A stretch of DNA of 63,688 bases, filler included, from Octopus bimaculoides (lineage: Eukaryota), in the NCBI RefSeq assembly GCF_001194135.2. It is 5 parts of 5 records of this genome, joined end to end, with 100 filler letters (N's around TTAATTAATTAA, not from the genome) between each part and the next. Parts side by side here need not be neighbours in the genome. Positions count along the whole stretch, not along the records: positions 18,902 to 35,519 come from NC_069005.1; 4 more parts are not named here. One strand, given 5' to 3'. Under the pieces are notes generated by a model. That model searched no databases. It was given only the letters and a program-made list of their open reading frames with translations, and had not been told where the DNA came from. Positions within the stretch are counted from its first letter, which is position 1. Each line of letters begins with the position of its first letter. A program made the translations under genes and the position numbers. Positions 20,029 through 30,672 of this stretch are shown in pieces.

Positions 20029-20497
20029 TCACTCCAGGAACGTTAATGCAGGAGTTGTAACCAGGGTGTGATGTTTTCGATAAGCGTTCGGATCATATAC
20101 GTTCTGTGACAGTTTATGTCGATCATAGTACGTCTTCAGTTGCACCAGTTGATTCACTTTCTCATGGATATCTATTATAGACTGCTGGATCAATTTCGTG
20201 TTGGACACAATATCATTAATATCTTTCAAGGAGCTGACATCACTGCCTATGACTTCCATTAACTCTATTAGTTCAAGTTTAAATTCTTTTAGGGCTTCCT
20301 TTGACTGCTCTATTTCCTCCGTCTCAGCGTCGGCTTCTTCAACCTCGTTCTGGTCCAAATTCTGAATATTATGCAGAGTCCTACGCAACACTGCATGGTC
20401 ATGCAGGTAAGTCTGCTGTTTTTTAGCAATGATGGGAAACAAAATGTTCATTTCTGCATTGAGGTTTCCAATTTCGGAGTGAATTTCCACCAGAAAC
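20029..20497 (-). CDS. CCDC63/ODAD1-like: Paralogue A, coding exon 2 (terminal)
   Basis: Acceptor ccatttctttcag|G completes the AG|G Arg codon, giving RFLVEIHSEIGNL... to TGA. 935+469=1404 nt, in frame. Homologous to paralogue B exon 2. Confidence 0.85.
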
Positions 20498-20538
20498 CTG
20501 AAAGAAATGGACAGAAGATTATAAACACACGCACACGC

Positions 20539-20580
<42 letters not shown>

Positions 20581-22091
20581 AAGAATACTACTGGTAACAA
20601 CGTGTTGCGAAGTCGGTTACTAAACTGACTCCTCCACCAGACTTGCCCGGTAGGAAACAAAAAATACTTACCAAAAGGACGGCTGAAAGCAATGTTAGGT
20701 CAATGCCTCTCTAGCAACAAGTGAACTACAAGATCAGCTTGAAGTGATGGACTTCTAGTTCTTGTTCTTCTTTATCTGTCTCGAAAAATCCTCAGATGTA
20801 AAATCTGAGGATGAGCCTGCTTCTGGTTGTCCCAGCCCATGCTAGGCCGTCAGGAGGAAAGCTAGTTAGGCGAAAAGTGAATACTTCACTCACTATTTTC
20901 AATTTCACGAGAGGAACTTCTTGGAAAGCACATTATGGACAGATGTAAAACATACAGGCTTGACCAGCCGCAAGTATGTATTTTCAAACCTGCAGGTAGG
21001 TAGTTTGGGATATTGGTTGCTTTTTATCAAAATTATGATTATAGAAAACATTCTGCAACACCTCAATGACCGTGTAGTCCTCTTTAGGGATAATAGTGCA
21101 TCCCTGTTTATCTAAATAAGGTGATCTAAAGAGATCATGTCACCCAAATTTACCAAACCCTTATAAGATGAACCGCCCAGCATTCCGTATGAGCTGCAAG
21201 TTGAAGTCTAAACTAATTACCTATCTTAGAAATCACCAGGGACAAGAAAACTAATGCTAAAAGGTACTGCCAATATTTAGGATGTGATTGAAGGCAGTGA
21301 GCTGGTAGAATCGTCACCTCATCGGAAAAATGCTTAGCAGCATTTCTTTCGACTTTTTATTCGAACACCATCGGGGTCGACTTTGTCTTTCATCCTTTTG
21401 GGGGTCGATGAAATAAGTACCAGTTGAGTACTGAGGGAGGGGGTCGATGTAACTGACTTATACCTATCTCCGAAATTATTGGCCTTCTGTCAAAATTCGA
21501 AACGAATATCTGGGATGTAGTTGTACTCGGCCTAAAGTGGACTTGCGCCATAATTATTTAAAGCAAGGTAAGGAACACTCTATCGTCTATCTTATACAAA
21601 TCTGTAGCATATTTTCTTATCCCTTTTATTGATATTCACTACGTTACACTATCTAGATGTGAATATTATCCTACAGGTTATTGCAACAAAATTTTATCTG
21701 ATGTCGATGAAGTCACTGTCAATCTTTTTTATGTAAAAATTGAGTCTTTTAAGCAATATTGAGTAATCATTTAGTTTAATGTTAAATACCTTCACATAAA
21801 AGCAAACATTAATATATGTTCGCGTGCGTGCATGCGTGTGTGTGCATGTGTGTGTGTGTGTGTGTGTGTGAAAATAAGTAGACAGACATATACGTAGAGT
21901 GGTAGATAAATGAAATAAAGTAGGAAGACAGGTGGGTTTGTCGATACATTGATAGATTGGAGAATACTCCAATGGAAATGTCTCATTAATACGCCAAAGA
22001 TAAGTTTGTATGAAAAAGTAAAACTTCGCAAACTCAGAAGACTTTGCTAATTGTACAGGCGTAATTAGACAGGAAATTAAATAATACTTAC

Positions 22092-23026
22092 CTAAAAAGT
22101 GAAAAGTTGTCACTCCTCTTGTTTTGAAAGCGACTTATTGTTGATTTTATGTCAAGATACCCGCTAACTTCTTTGATCTTTGAAAATGCTTTCATGTATT
22201 CATTTAGCTGTCGACGCCGTGTGGCCAATTCTTTCTCATTTTTCTTCAAATAAATATCCAATGAATACACTTCTCGCTCCTGCACCAACACCGAAATGAA
22301 TTCTTCAAAATTCATCGCATTGAAAGCATTCCTATCAATTTCGTTCATTTCAAATCTATAAAGGTTTTCATTGTGTTCAATTCGTTCGTTGAGGCTGACA
22401 ATTTTTGTGGTAGCTTCTTCTTTTTTACGATTTGCATTTGAAGAGATCCTCACCAGCTTTTGCATTCTGAAACTAGCATCATTGTGTAAAGCTTCAAGGC
22501 GGGAACACATCGCTTCGAAGGTATTCAGTCGACACTGCAGAGAAGACAATTCTGCTCGTAGTTTTGACAGTTCTGTGTATTGTTTTCCAAATTCAACAGT
22601 CTTCACTTGAAGCCGGTTTTCCATTAAGTGAATATATCTCTTTACTACTGATATTATTTCTTCAGACAATTCCGCATCACGTTCGTCTTCTTGAAGTTTT
22701 GTTTTTGAAATTTTCAGGCATTTGTCGAGTGTGGCTCTTTGTTCTGGTGTCAGCTGTCCGTTGACTCCATCCATGTAATTGCTTTCTAGATGATGCAAAG
22801 CGTTTATCATAGCTTGTTCTAGTGGTGGTATTTTATATGATCGACAAATAGACAAAATTAGGTCCAACTCTTCTCCTTCCGTCTTCAGGCGATAGTATTT
22901 TCTGCTCTGCCAAAACAGTGTCTTTTTGTATTTTTTCAATTGTGAGCTGGTTTCACGAAAGGCACTACCAAGTGCCTGTTGATAGTGAATCATCTGTTGT
23001 TCTCCTTTATCTAAACGTCGAGTCAT
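22092..23026 (-). CDS. CCDC63/ODAD1-like: Paralogue A, coding exon 1: ODAD1/CCDC114/CCDC63-family (DC2) outer dynein arm docking coiled-coil protein; spliced product about 467 aa
   Basis: 312-codon ORF ending at a phase-2 donor AG|GTAAGT. Motifs IHLMENRL, ELSKLRAEL, SSNANRKKEEATTKIVSLNER and YMKAFSKIKEVSG..NFSLF match the DC2/ODAD1 pattern (IRILENxL, LREEL, STSAYxxREEAxxKM, YExAxxKI..NFxxF). Confidence 0.85.
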
Positions 23027-28054: not shown

Positions 28055-28131
28055 GCGTATGTACATATATGAATATATATTATACATATATATACACATA
28101 CACACACACACGCACACACATACATACATAT

Positions 28132-28164
<33 letters not shown>

Positions 28165-29519
28165 NNNNNNNNNNNNNNNNNNNNNNNNNNNNNNNNNNNN
28201 NNNNNNNNNNNNNNNNNNNNNNNNNNNNNNNNNNNNNNNNNNNNNNNNNNNNNNNNNNNNNNNNNNNNNNNNNNNNNNNNNNNNNNNNNNNNNNNNNNNN
28301 NNNNNNNNNNNNNNNNNNNNNNNNNNNNNNNNNNNNNNNNNNNNNNNNNNNNNNNNNNNNNNNNNNNNNNNNNNNNNNNNNNNNNNNNNNNNNNNNNNNN
28401 NNNNNNNNNNNNNNNNNNNNNNNNNNNNNNNNNNNNNNNNNNNNNNNNNNNNNNNNNNNNNNNNNNNNNNNNNNNNNNNNNNNNNNNNNNNNNNNNNNNN
28501 NNNNNNNNNNNNNNNNNNNNNNNNNNNNNNNNNNNNNNNNNNNNNNNNNNNNNNNNNNNNNNNNNNNNNNNNNNNNNNNNNNNNNNNNNNNNNNNNNNNN
28601 NNNNNNNNNNNNNNNNNNNNNNNNNNNNNNNNNNNNNNNNNNNNNNNNNNNNNNNNNNNNNNNNNNNNNNNNNNNNNNNNNNNNNNNNNNNNNNNNNNNN
28701 NNNNNNNNNNNNNNNNNNNNNNNNNNNNNNNNNNNNNNNNNNNNNNNNNNNNNNNNNNNNNNNNNNNNNNNNNNNNNNNNNNNNNNNNNNNNNNNNNNNN
28801 NNNNNNNNNNNNNNNNNNNNNNNNNNNNNNNNNNNNNNNNNNNNNNNNNNNNNNNNNNNNNNNNNNNNNNNNNNNNNNNNNNNNNNNNNNNNNNNNNNNN
28901 NNNNNNNNNNNNNNNNNNNNNNNNNNNNNNNNNNNNNNNNNNNNNNNNNNNNNNNNNNNNNNNNNNNNNNNNNNNNNNNNNNNNNNNNNNNNNNNNNNNN
29001 NTATATATATATATATATATGGGAGAATATACAAATAATAACAACAGACGAGGACAGGTGGTGTAAATAACAAAAGTATATATTAGTATGACGCTCGGGA
29101 ATACGAAACACGCCCCCCCCACACACACACACATACATATATACACATACACATATGTACATTCATACATATATACACATACACATATGTACATTCATAC
29201 ATATATACACACATAAATGTGTGTGTGTGTGTGTGTGTTAGTGTAGGTTATTTAATCTTAAACTTTGTACTGAAACGAAATATATATGATTGTCTGACAA
29301 TCATTCATTTCCCATATAATCTAGGAGTCTGTGTATGGTGTTCTAGCATGGCTTTAGTCACAATGGTTAAAAGAAACTAAAGAACATCATAAGAGTAAAA
29401 TGAAATTAACTTTGATCCCTGACTTGATGCTTCTTTGATAGCTTTCTTATTCTTCAGATGATCGCTAAGTCAAAGAAAAAAGCAAGTGCGCAATTTTTTT
29501 TTACAAACAAAAGGTTTAC

Positions 29520-30451
29520 CTGAAGAGTGAAAAATTGTTTTTCTCATTGAGGCAAAACTCCTTTATAATCAGATCAATGTTATCATGAATTGAAGTTTCT
29601 TTTATTGCAGCTATTGCTGTTTGATCTTCCCTCAGCTGTCGATATCGTGTGTTTAGTTCCTTCTCTAATTTCTTCAAGCTGTTATCCAAAGTATACCAGT
29701 ACCGTTCTCTGGAAATATCAGCCATAAAGTTCTCGAAATTGTACTGCTGCATAGATTGTCGGTCGATTTCGTTTAGTTCGAAATTAAAGTGACATTCATT
29801 AAGTTTAATTAACTGCCTCATTCCAACAACTTTTTTGTCAGCTTCTGTTATCTTGTCGGTAATATCTACACAGGCCTTGGATATTGTTTGCATTTTTGAG
29901 AAGAAATAACCATGTTTCTCCTCTAGTTTGTAGAAAGTATCTTCAAATATTTTCAATCGTTGATTTAGGCTGTAAAATTCATTTCTTATTTTTGCCAATT
30001 CCGACCGAATTTGGCCGAACTCAAGCGTTTTCACTTCCAGTGAATTTTCCATGATGTGGATCTGTTTCTTCAAGGCTTCCTCTATCTCTTCGAAGTTATT
30101 CAGCTCTCTTTGTTCCGATATGATCTTGTTTTTTTGTTTATTAATGAAACTATCAAATAAAGCCAGGTCTTCTGGTTTCGACACTTCTCGGGATAATTTT
30201 CTTTCCCTTTTCTGCACATCTACCATATTGTCCTTAAGAAACTGCTCACTGTGAGGAAGTTTGTAGTTTTGCCTAAGATACAGCATGAAGTTTAACTCTG
30301 CTTCATCCAATTTTAGTCGTTTCATGTTCGAGTTCTGCCAAAATAAAGTTCTATTCCGTTGATTCAATTGTATAGAGGAATTCCTAAAAAGGTGAGTCAG
30401 CTTATGCTGCAAATAACCCATTTCATGAGGTTTCTTGGAGTTGTCAGCCAT
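29520..30451 (-). CDS. CCDC63/ODAD1-like: Paralogue B, coding exon 1: ODAD1/CCDC63-family coiled-coil protein; spliced product about 465 aa (490 aa if ATG 30526 is used)
   Basis: Long ORF collinear and essentially gap-free with paralogue A (TLFWQ, IHIMENSL, NEIDR, LKKLEKEL, NFSLFR). Phase-2 donor AG|GTAAAC. Start MADNSKK (gtagcaATGG) matches paralogue A in length. Confidence 0.85.
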
Positions 30452-30672
30452 TGCTACTGATGCTGGCAGTGGTGCACTTGACAAAGTGTTGTTGTTGGTG
30501 GCTAGAAGGACAAGCAGTGAAAACATATTAGGTTACTGCTCAGACAACAAATCGACAAAGGAATTTACGCACATACATGTATACATTCTTATCTGGAATG
30601 TGCTTGTATATATATAAATCTATATATATATATATATGTGTGTGTATACTTATATAAGATAGAGATAATTAA

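Follow-up and report, generated by a model that had tools for sequence, protein, structure and literature searches.

The genome of Octopus bimaculoides carries, on the minus strand, a tandem pair of two-exon genes, here termed A and B, whose products are identified by sequence and profile comparison as members of the DC2/ODAD1/CCDC63 family of coiled-coil proteins, which dock outer dynein arms in cilia and in the flagella of sperm. The pair is located at about 35.41-35.43 Mb of the 35.49 Mb chromosome CM046625.1 (assembly GCA_001194135.2), within positions 18902-35519 of the window, which is the whole stretch of 63,688 nucleotides. Judged from database searches, A, B, and a cuttlefish gene constitute a coleoid-only clade that looks derived from a retrocopy. 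Gene A is under purifying selection, while gene B appears to be retained as a coding gene whose amino acids turn over about three to four times faster. The explanation rated best as a whole, with a probability slightly above even, is that A and B are tandem DC2-family paralogues of retrocopy origin that would serve as alternative docking-type subunits, most probably in the sperm flagellum.

Organization of the Gene Pair

The piece of the window that contains the pair has a G+C content of 38% and a single internal run of N (28165-29001, 837 N). The genes follow each other in the order B then A, and their parts, established for B by translation and splice joining, are listed below, with a slash marking the exon-intron border.

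29520-30451, minus strand: coding exon 1 of gene B, 310 codons plus 2 nt, starting at a conserved ATG (MADNSKK...)
27966-29519, minus strand: intron of gene B, GT..AG, phase 2, donor cag/gtaaac, acceptor tgcag/A, carrying the N gap and microsatellites
27500-27965, minus strand: coding exon 2 of gene B, 154 codons plus the stop at 27502-27500, the fastest-evolving part
23027-27499, no strand: spacer of 4.5 kb from the B stop to the A start
22092-23026, minus strand: coding exon 1 of gene A, 311 codons plus 2 nt
20498-22091, minus strand: intron of gene A, GT (22091-22090)..AG (20499-20498), phase 2, donor tag/gtaagt, acceptor tttcag/G
20029-20497, minus strand: coding exon 2 of gene A, 155 codons plus the stop at 20031-20029

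The encoded proteins are 467 aa (A) and 465 aa (B) long. Both are called as genes in assembly GCA_001194135.2, the translation of B exon 1 is 100% identical to an annotated O. bimaculoides protein (P0004), and an AATAAA lies 94 nt past the B stop, at 27406-27401. An intact, collinear, same-strand pair 4.5 kb apart had been described in an earlier reading of the sequence alone (the sequence-only reading), and this description is borne out by BLASTP with composition-based statistics, in which A and B share 160 of 463 residues (35%; 54% positives; 11 gap positions; E 1e-75). At the level of exons, the identity determined by tblastn is about 37.6% for exon 1 and about 29% for exon 2, in agreement with the manual count of that reading (about 106/277 in exon 1 and fewer in exon 2). 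Additionally, the intron of both genes occupies the same codon in the same phase (phase 2), within ...NFSLF-R/F-[LA]VEIH..., and the same GT-AG join was recovered in A of O. sinensis, A of Argonauta hians, and B of O. vulgaris.

The N run lies wholly within the intron of B, flanked by (TATATACA)n, (TG)n, and (ATACATAT)n arrays, and the coding sequence of B continues over the exon junction, with zero residues missing when it is compared with A or with the orthologue from O. vulgaris; the gap therefore leaves the reading frame of B unaffected and hides no coding sequence. These observations also bear on the possibility that the pair is an artefact of assembly or annotation, in the form of a collapsed or duplicated region or of an exon concealed by the gap. 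The presence of 837 N within the locus and its richness in microsatellites could invite such an explanation, but the 35% identity of A and B is far too low for an assembly duplication, each copy has its own orthologues in the independent O. sinensis, O. vulgaris, and Argonauta assemblies as well as in read-set contigs, and the gap is intronic. An artefact is accordingly regarded as extremely improbable.

Several candidate features were rejected. Inverted repeats reported over 28129-29031 are an artefact of N matched to N. The dinucleotide arrays just upstream of the two exon-2 acceptors, (AC)27 at 20525-20578 and (TG)26 at 28004-28055, were considered as homologous features, but they stand on opposite strands relative to the genes and represent a coincidence in a microsatellite-rich genome, not a conserved feature. 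An in-frame ATG at 30526 was rejected as the start of B, as O. vulgaris has a stop codon just before its MADKS start. The limits of the locus in the sequence-only reading, 20029 and 30526, correspond to the stop of A and to this nonconserved upstream ATG of B, which occurs only in O. bimaculoides. The O. vulgaris model of B (423 aa) is N-terminally short: the frame remains open for 42 further codons (L003 9872-10000), and these end at MADKSIK..., matching the O. bimaculoides start at 30451.

Membership in the DC2/ODAD1/CCDC63 Family

The Pfam profile of the ODAD1 central coiled coil (PF21773, ODAD1_CC; gathering cutoff 27 bits) is matched by A with 118.6 bits (residues 130-404, profile positions 2-283 of 287) and by B with 61.3 bits (residues 153-423), while the remaining Pfam matches of both proteins all fall below their own thresholds. 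The orthologues of A and B carry the precomputed ODAD1_CC tag in databases. Among the sequences of solved structures, A is most similar to Chlamydomonas DC2 (E 5.5e-8); human ODAD1, CCDC114, and CCDC63 come next. B is most similar to CCDC63. A profile of the clade, compared with the PDB sequences, gave eight matches, of which the significant ones (E <=1e-4) are all of the DC2/ODAD1 type or belong to the complex that docks outer dynein arms (ODA-DC): DC2 (2.9e-11), CCDC63 (9.1e-10), ODAD1 (2e-8), a Tetrahymena ODA-DC protein (2.4e-6), and CCDC114 (8e-5). The other three had E values of 0.017-8.9, and up to E 10 no ODAD3/CCDC151 or DC1 chain was matched, although such entries as 8j07 and 7rro are present in the library. 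On the basis of these comparisons, A and B are members of the DC2/ODAD1/CCDC63 family, as the sequence-only reading had supposed, the family profile being passed by both and the significant solved relatives being of DC2 type only.

In an alignment of 37 sequences, A and B are collinear with the canonical proteins across the whole central coiled coil, with very few indels, and the residues of A that are invariant in it are L47, R157, K208, E226, R232, F243, R251, F300, F308, E316, and P461. The family motifs examined were ENRL, FxxxLxxNxxLR, and TGExDIDxLVxxFIExEDxNFALFNYVNE; ENRL is kept in A, and NFSLF is kept in both A and B. The AlphaFold2 model of A (mean predicted local distance difference test score, pLDDT, 75.5; predicted template modeling score, pTM, 0.24) consists of long helices at residues 7-63, 68-87, 94-288, 309-395, and 412-443, in which the break at 288-308 coincides with the conserved hinge motif.

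The identity of A and B to canonical proteins is about 18-26%, compared with 45-59% between a scallop protein and the other bivalve and gastropod members of its own group, so that the two copies are, as had been suspected from the sequence alone, far more diverged than typical orthologues. The names currently attached to these genes are misleading: B is recorded in O. bimaculoides as 'centromere-associated protein E', and the O. sinensis orthologue of A as 'uncharacterized protein LOC115224478'. The present analysis corrects the annotation, both A and B being proteins with an ODAD1_CC domain.

Distribution and Phylogenetic Position

Word-indexed searches with either protein returned octopods only. 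The matches to A were O. sinensis LOC115224478 (94%), an exon-1 open reading frame (ORF) of a third octopod (88%), and Argonauta hians (59%), and those to B were O. bimaculoides itself (100%), O. vulgaris (80%), and the third octopod (66%). When 1.84 billion representative proteins were searched with a profile, octopod members scored more than 500 bits and a cuttlefish sequence (P0007) scored 133 bits, whereas all others reached at most 103 bits, the next-best named proteins being scallop and Lingula 'CCDC63(-like)'. P0007 is a 311-residue exon-1 ORF on contigs from genomic read sets, one of which, ERR12945500, has been cited for a cuttlefish, Acanthosepion esculentum. It ends in ...SFARFR followed by gtaacg, which is the same 311-codon exon end and phase-2 donor as in A and B, and therefore the two-exon subfamily is coleoid-wide, with a single type of two-exon gene found in cuttlefish. 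Within the representatives searched, A, B, and the cuttlefish gene thus form, by sequence, a coleoid-only clade.

A neighbor-joining (NJ) tree of 512 columns with 200 bootstraps united A and B with 100% support, A, B, and the cuttlefish gene with 100%, and this clade and the multi-exon CCDC63 genes of cephalopods with 88%. The cephalopod group as a whole is placed only weakly among the other animals (21-25% NJ bootstrap), and its position is likely affected by long branches. The A/B/cuttlefish clade is itself long-branched and is nested in neither of two molluscan groups, one ODAD1-like and one p66/CCDC63-like, and thus shows no one-to-one orthology with ODAD1 or CCDC63. The lineage specificity proposed from the sequence alone is in keeping with both the profile search and the tree, in which the clade is restricted to coleoids and is not conserved one-to-one across lophotrochozoans.

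As to the two molluscan groups, gastropods (e.g., Lottia, Haliotis, and Gigantopelta) possess two old DC2-type paralogues per species, and bivalve sequences occur in both groups. The 'ODAD1-like' group clusters with vertebrate ODAD1 and bryozoan CCDC114, and the 'p66/CCDC63-like' group with Lingula, annelid, and nemertean proteins. The database names CCDC63-like and ODAD1-like do not track these two groups.

A Separate Multi-Exon Gene and the Retrogene-Like Structure

A separate family member with many exons, which had been proposed as a point to look for, is present in O. bimaculoides on another chromosome, and neither A nor B is therefore the sole ordinary orthologue. This gene, XP_014784993.1 (P0021), is annotated as 'coiled-coil domain-containing protein 63', encodes 450 aa, and is located on CM046601.1, where it spans 16.5 kb with at least 8 exons; relatives exist in Argonauta and Acanthosepion pharaonis. 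Its exon boundaries lie near aa 52, 119, 155, 219, about 253-270, 350, and 436, and those of the canonical scallop gene (8 exons) near aa 53, 157, 228, 283, 378, about 470, and 499. At the NFSLF/NFALF position, where A, B, and the cuttlefish gene carry their intron, the exon is uninterrupted both in the multi-exon gene of octopus (aa 253-350) and in that of scallop (aa 280-378), and these two canonical genes are the ones on which the intron comparison was made. None of the introns of either gene is present in A or B, and the clade, being without every ancestral intron checked, looks retrogene-derived, with its single intron gained. A poly(A) remnant or target-site duplications would not be expected to persist in a structure that cuttlefish already share.

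The multi-exon proteins of cephalopods (including P0021 and P0090) resemble A and B in having no C-terminal tail and in having a basic residue after NFSLF, and these shared traits support a common cephalopod origin. Together, the 88% NJ grouping and the shared absence of the tail suggest that P0021 represents the parent of the retrocopy. Within the predicted XP_014784993.1 protein (L011, aa ~219-253), the stretch AAVAVFGASALDTDAFDAAVVFVIDADVAVKSMY aligns with neither the Argonauta orthologue nor other family members and is probably a mis-called exon.

Conservation of the Tandem Arrangement

The tandem order B-A is kept in O. bimaculoides, in the O. vulgaris/sinensis lineage, and in Argonauta. 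In Argonauta, an open B-type exon 2 (R/FLVYIHGEI...PPSAPPFE*, the asterisk denoting the stop) is found 6.9 kb upstream of A. The 3' flank of B in O. vulgaris overlaps the 5' flank of A in O. sinensis with 98-99% identity (L003 23610-26420 versus L002 215-2199), so that in this lineage B lies upstream of A at a distance of about 17.8 kb, compared with 4.5 kb in O. bimaculoides. The O. bimaculoides spacer is collinear with both of these flanks. Both introns are 2-3 times longer in O. vulgaris/sinensis, the B intron of O. vulgaris measuring 5.1 kb. Since the order is common to Octopus and Argonauta, the tandem pair is older than the split between them. The locus is close to a chromosome end both in O. 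bimaculoides (35.41-35.43 of 35.49 Mb) and in O. vulgaris (64-90 kb from the start of OX597838.1).

Selection on A and B

The sequence-only reading had taken the intact ORFs as a sign of long purifying selection on both genes, a view that holds for A and that for B stands only in the sense that stops and indels are absent. Between O. bimaculoides and O. sinensis, A shows a nonsynonymous divergence (dN) of 0.026 and a synonymous divergence (dS) of 0.108, giving a dN/dS of 0.24 (NG86) or 0.33 (YN00), and A exon 1 compared with the third octopod gives 0.21. The overall range of 0.20-0.33 is below 1 (P = 4e-7), and codons 241-330 have a dN of 0 between O. bimaculoides and O. sinensis. These ratios indicate that A is under purifying selection.

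For B, the comparison of O. bimaculoides with O. vulgaris gives a dN of 0.103 and a dS of 0.116, corresponding to a dN/dS of 0.89 (NG86) or 1.06 (YN00), with 137 differences distributed as 55/45/37 over codon positions 1/2/3; B exon 1 compared with the third octopod gives 0.73-0.91. In sliding windows, dN/dS rises to 1.7-1.9 in the C-terminal third, and a test of B exon 2 for dN/dS above 1 (pN/pS 1.39) was not significant (binomial P = 0.30), so that positive selection is not demonstrated. No stop and no indel separates B from its relatives in any comparison. When the observed substitutions were placed at random, B stayed open in 0.2% of trials over its full length (versus O. vulgaris), and B exon 1 in 0.065% (versus the third octopod; P 0.00065). 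In noncoding flanks, 0-7 gap events were counted per stretch (2-7 in 300-nt stretches), versus none in 1395 coding nt of B. The rarity of an open frame in the neutral simulations, together with the absence of indels, argues that B is maintained as a coding gene, with an amino acid turnover about 3-4 times faster than that of A. Its pattern is compatible with relaxed constraint on the coiled coil, or with constraint mixed with diversifying selection.

The same results bear on the alternative that A alone is functional and that B is a redundant duplicate on its way to becoming a pseudogene, so far without a disabling change. Such drift would agree with an overall dN/dS of 0.89-1.06, not different from 1, with codon positions 1 and 2 having more differences than position 3, and with a family-profile score of B much below that of A. 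It is hard to reconcile with the open frames, canonical splice sites, and zero indels that characterize B of O. bimaculoides, B of O. vulgaris, and exon 1 of B in the third octopod, with the small fractions of neutral simulations that leave the frame open, and with the gap events of the flanks as against none in the coding sequence. Moreover, Argonauta keeps an open B-type exon 2 even though synonymous sites are saturated between Octopus and Argonauta. A drifting B is consequently considered very unlikely.

Proposed History and Function

According to the favored explanation, the genome of the coleoid ancestor would have received a processed copy of a DC2-type gene of cephalopods, probably without a tail by then, and this copy would then have gained one intron, after which the two-exon gene would have been duplicated in tandem in octopods, later than the cuttlefish split and earlier than the Octopus/Argonauta split. 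Each protein would form a long parallel coiled coil with a partner, which may be an ODAD3/DC1-type protein or the other copy, and this coiled coil would act as an alternative subunit of docking type that runs along the doublet microtubules of the axoneme, most probably in the sperm flagellum. By homology, long coiled coils on axonemal doublets are the most likely form of action of A and B. The sperm flagellum is proposed because retrogene origin, tandem duplication, and rapid evolution are typical of male germ-line genes, a combination that points to a male germ-line role for the pair. No RFX X-box was detected in a scan of the sequence upstream of A and B and of their orthologues, nor upstream of the cuttlefish gene or of the controls, which were the canonical genes of octopus and scallop, so that the scan is uninformative.

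A number of observations weigh against this explanation or against parts of it. With respect to docking, B is without the R of the ENRL motif (ENSL, in MENSLE); A, B, and their orthologues have no conserved C-terminal extension (the acidic stretch PPxxGDEYESD, RPLTxxELxxxVxK, and a basic end) and stop about 90 residues earlier; and both lack a portion of the acidic N-terminus that canonical DC2 proteins have. A Foldseek comparison of the A monomer model with the PDB gave nothing significant (best E 5.4), a result that is uninformative for an isolated, long, extended helix. With respect to origin, the BLAST score of A is 73 bits to the multi-exon octopus gene versus about 95-107 bits to Priapulus and other canonical proteins, and long-branch attraction may account for the 88% support that joins the clade and the cephalopod multi-exon gene. 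When an octopus orthologue of the 'ODAD1-like' group was sought, no cephalopod was found among the best 120 of 403 matches to the scallop query, and cluster look-ups for such a member pointed to the CCDC63-type gene without a tail and to no other. The database matches to A and B included no full-length spliced copy assembled from read sets, and the substitution pattern of B (dN/dS 0.7-1.06) is by itself indistinguishable from neutrality. Additionally, a search of the literature for these gene identifiers or for docking complexes of cephalopods or octopus found nothing specific.

The loss of the terminal regions is also the starting point for a serious rival, namely a shift of A and B to a new function in which the DC2 scaffold is kept without docking of the outer arm, the proteins acting as factors for the maturation or transport of dynein arms in the manner of ODA5/ODA10, or as structural coiled coils elsewhere in sperm or the cytoskeleton. 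The altered ENRL motif of B, the identity to canonical proteins of merely 18-26%, and the existence of a multi-exon CCDC63 gene that remains for the ordinary task would all accord with such a shift, and a precedent is offered by Chlamydomonas ODA5 and ODA10, relatives of the docking complex that act in assembly rather than docking (PMC6367277). On the other hand, the entire central coiled coil is still collinear with docking subunits with very few indels, and codons 241-330 of A, in which dN is 0, overlap the part of A with the highest score to DC2. The missing tail had been pointed out in the sequence-only reading, and it is indeed absent from A and B, but it is not special to the pair: it is lost in the cephalopod multi-exon gene as well and is thus not by itself a loss of the docking role. 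On these grounds, a new function is possible but on the doubtful side.

A more specific form of the docking explanation holds that octopods have an alternative docking module peculiar to their lineage, in which A and B pair with each other and thereby replace the DC2/ODAD3 coiled coil on the doublets of the octopod sperm flagellum, with the C-terminal third of B under positive selection from sperm competition; this combination is decidedly unlikely.

Comparison with Known Docking Subunits

Vertebrate CCDC63 (9fqr), the paralogue of ODAD1/CCDC114 in sperm, is comparable to A and B in its ODAD1_CC domain, in being collinear with them from about residue 17-60 to about residue 395-435, and in being an extra DC2-type copy that exists beside another family member; CCDC63 replaces ODAD1 in mammalian sperm (PMC11779644). 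Male mice with a Ccdc63 knockout are sterile and have shortened flagella (PMC4632774). A and B differ from it in that they are not orthologues but a separate coleoid clade, about 20-25% identical to canonical proteins, without the approximately 90 C-terminal residues (including the acidic stretch and RPLTxxEL), and with a two-exon retrogene-like structure.

Chlamydomonas DC2 (ODA1; 6u42, 7kzm, 7kzo, and 8glv) is the best-scoring solved relative of both A and the clade profile, and the strongest match covers residues 272-432 of A, including the hinge motif SG..DI...I..F......NFSLF. The similarity is nevertheless very distant: DC2 has 552 aa and a tail, and experiments have established that it partners with DC1 and DC3, whereas any partners of A and B are putative.

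Among cephalopods, the octopus gene XP_014784993.1 and its Argonauta and cuttlefish relatives belong to the same family, are tail-less, have NFSLF followed by a basic residue, and are sister to the clade in the NJ tree (88%). XP_014784993.1 differs in having at least 8 exons, with boundaries common to the scallop gene, in its location on chromosome CM046601.1, and in being only 26-28% identical to A and B.

In Drosophila, the DC2 paralogues CG17083 (testis only) and CG14905 (chordotonal only) represent an independent, lineage-specific split of DC2 into copies specific to cell types (PMC6367277). Their division of labor was shown by expression and RNA interference (RNAi), unlike that of the octopus pair, which is a conjecture.

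The splitting of DC2 into somatic and sperm paralogues is thus already known in vertebrates and flies, and the octopus pair is a further example rather than a new kind of system. The locus adds a third independent case, in cephalopods, to those of vertebrates (ODAD1/CCDC63) and flies. What is unusual here is a coleoid-only subfamily with the look of a retrogene, its later tandem duplication, and the sharply unequal evolution of the copies. Should expression prove specific to the male germ line, the pair would offer a convenient system for the question of why sperm axonemes repeatedly recruit a docking subunit of their own, and also for that of the degree of sequence change tolerated by the docking coiled coil.

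Sequence Around the Genes

The 300 nt upstream of the A start codon (23027-23326) show 214 matches and 6 mismatches with O. sinensis (97% of aligned bases); this exceeds the conservation of synonymous sites (dS about 0.08-0.11) and suggests that the 5' untranslated region or the promoter is constrained. Downstream of B, too, a stretch of 300 nt has 94% identity to O. vulgaris. An ORF at 26228-26575, the only ORF of the spacer tested, had no Pfam match, and scans of the piece with Rfam and for tRNA genes returned nothing. Upstream of B, a partial copy of its first exon was detected by repeat search and tblastn.

30673-30833, minus strand: incomplete copy of B exon 1 in direct orientation, about 160 bp (source 29785-29942)

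The copy corresponds to B aa 196-247, lies in direct orientation 220-380 bp upstream of the B start codon, and comprises two repeat families (D3 and D4) with 95% and 80% identity. No counterpart was detected at the O. vulgaris locus, and the copy looks like a recent, lineage-specific partial duplication.

Farther from the pair, positions 31168-35497 contain ORF fragments that resemble remains of transposable elements. An ORF at 31168-31755 (minus strand) resembles by eye part of a reverse transcriptase, with no Pfam match, and one at 34377-34889 (minus strand) resembles an integrase zinc-binding domain (E 0.0017, below the Pfam threshold), while that at 33534-33959 (plus strand) encodes a three-finger C2H2 sequence.

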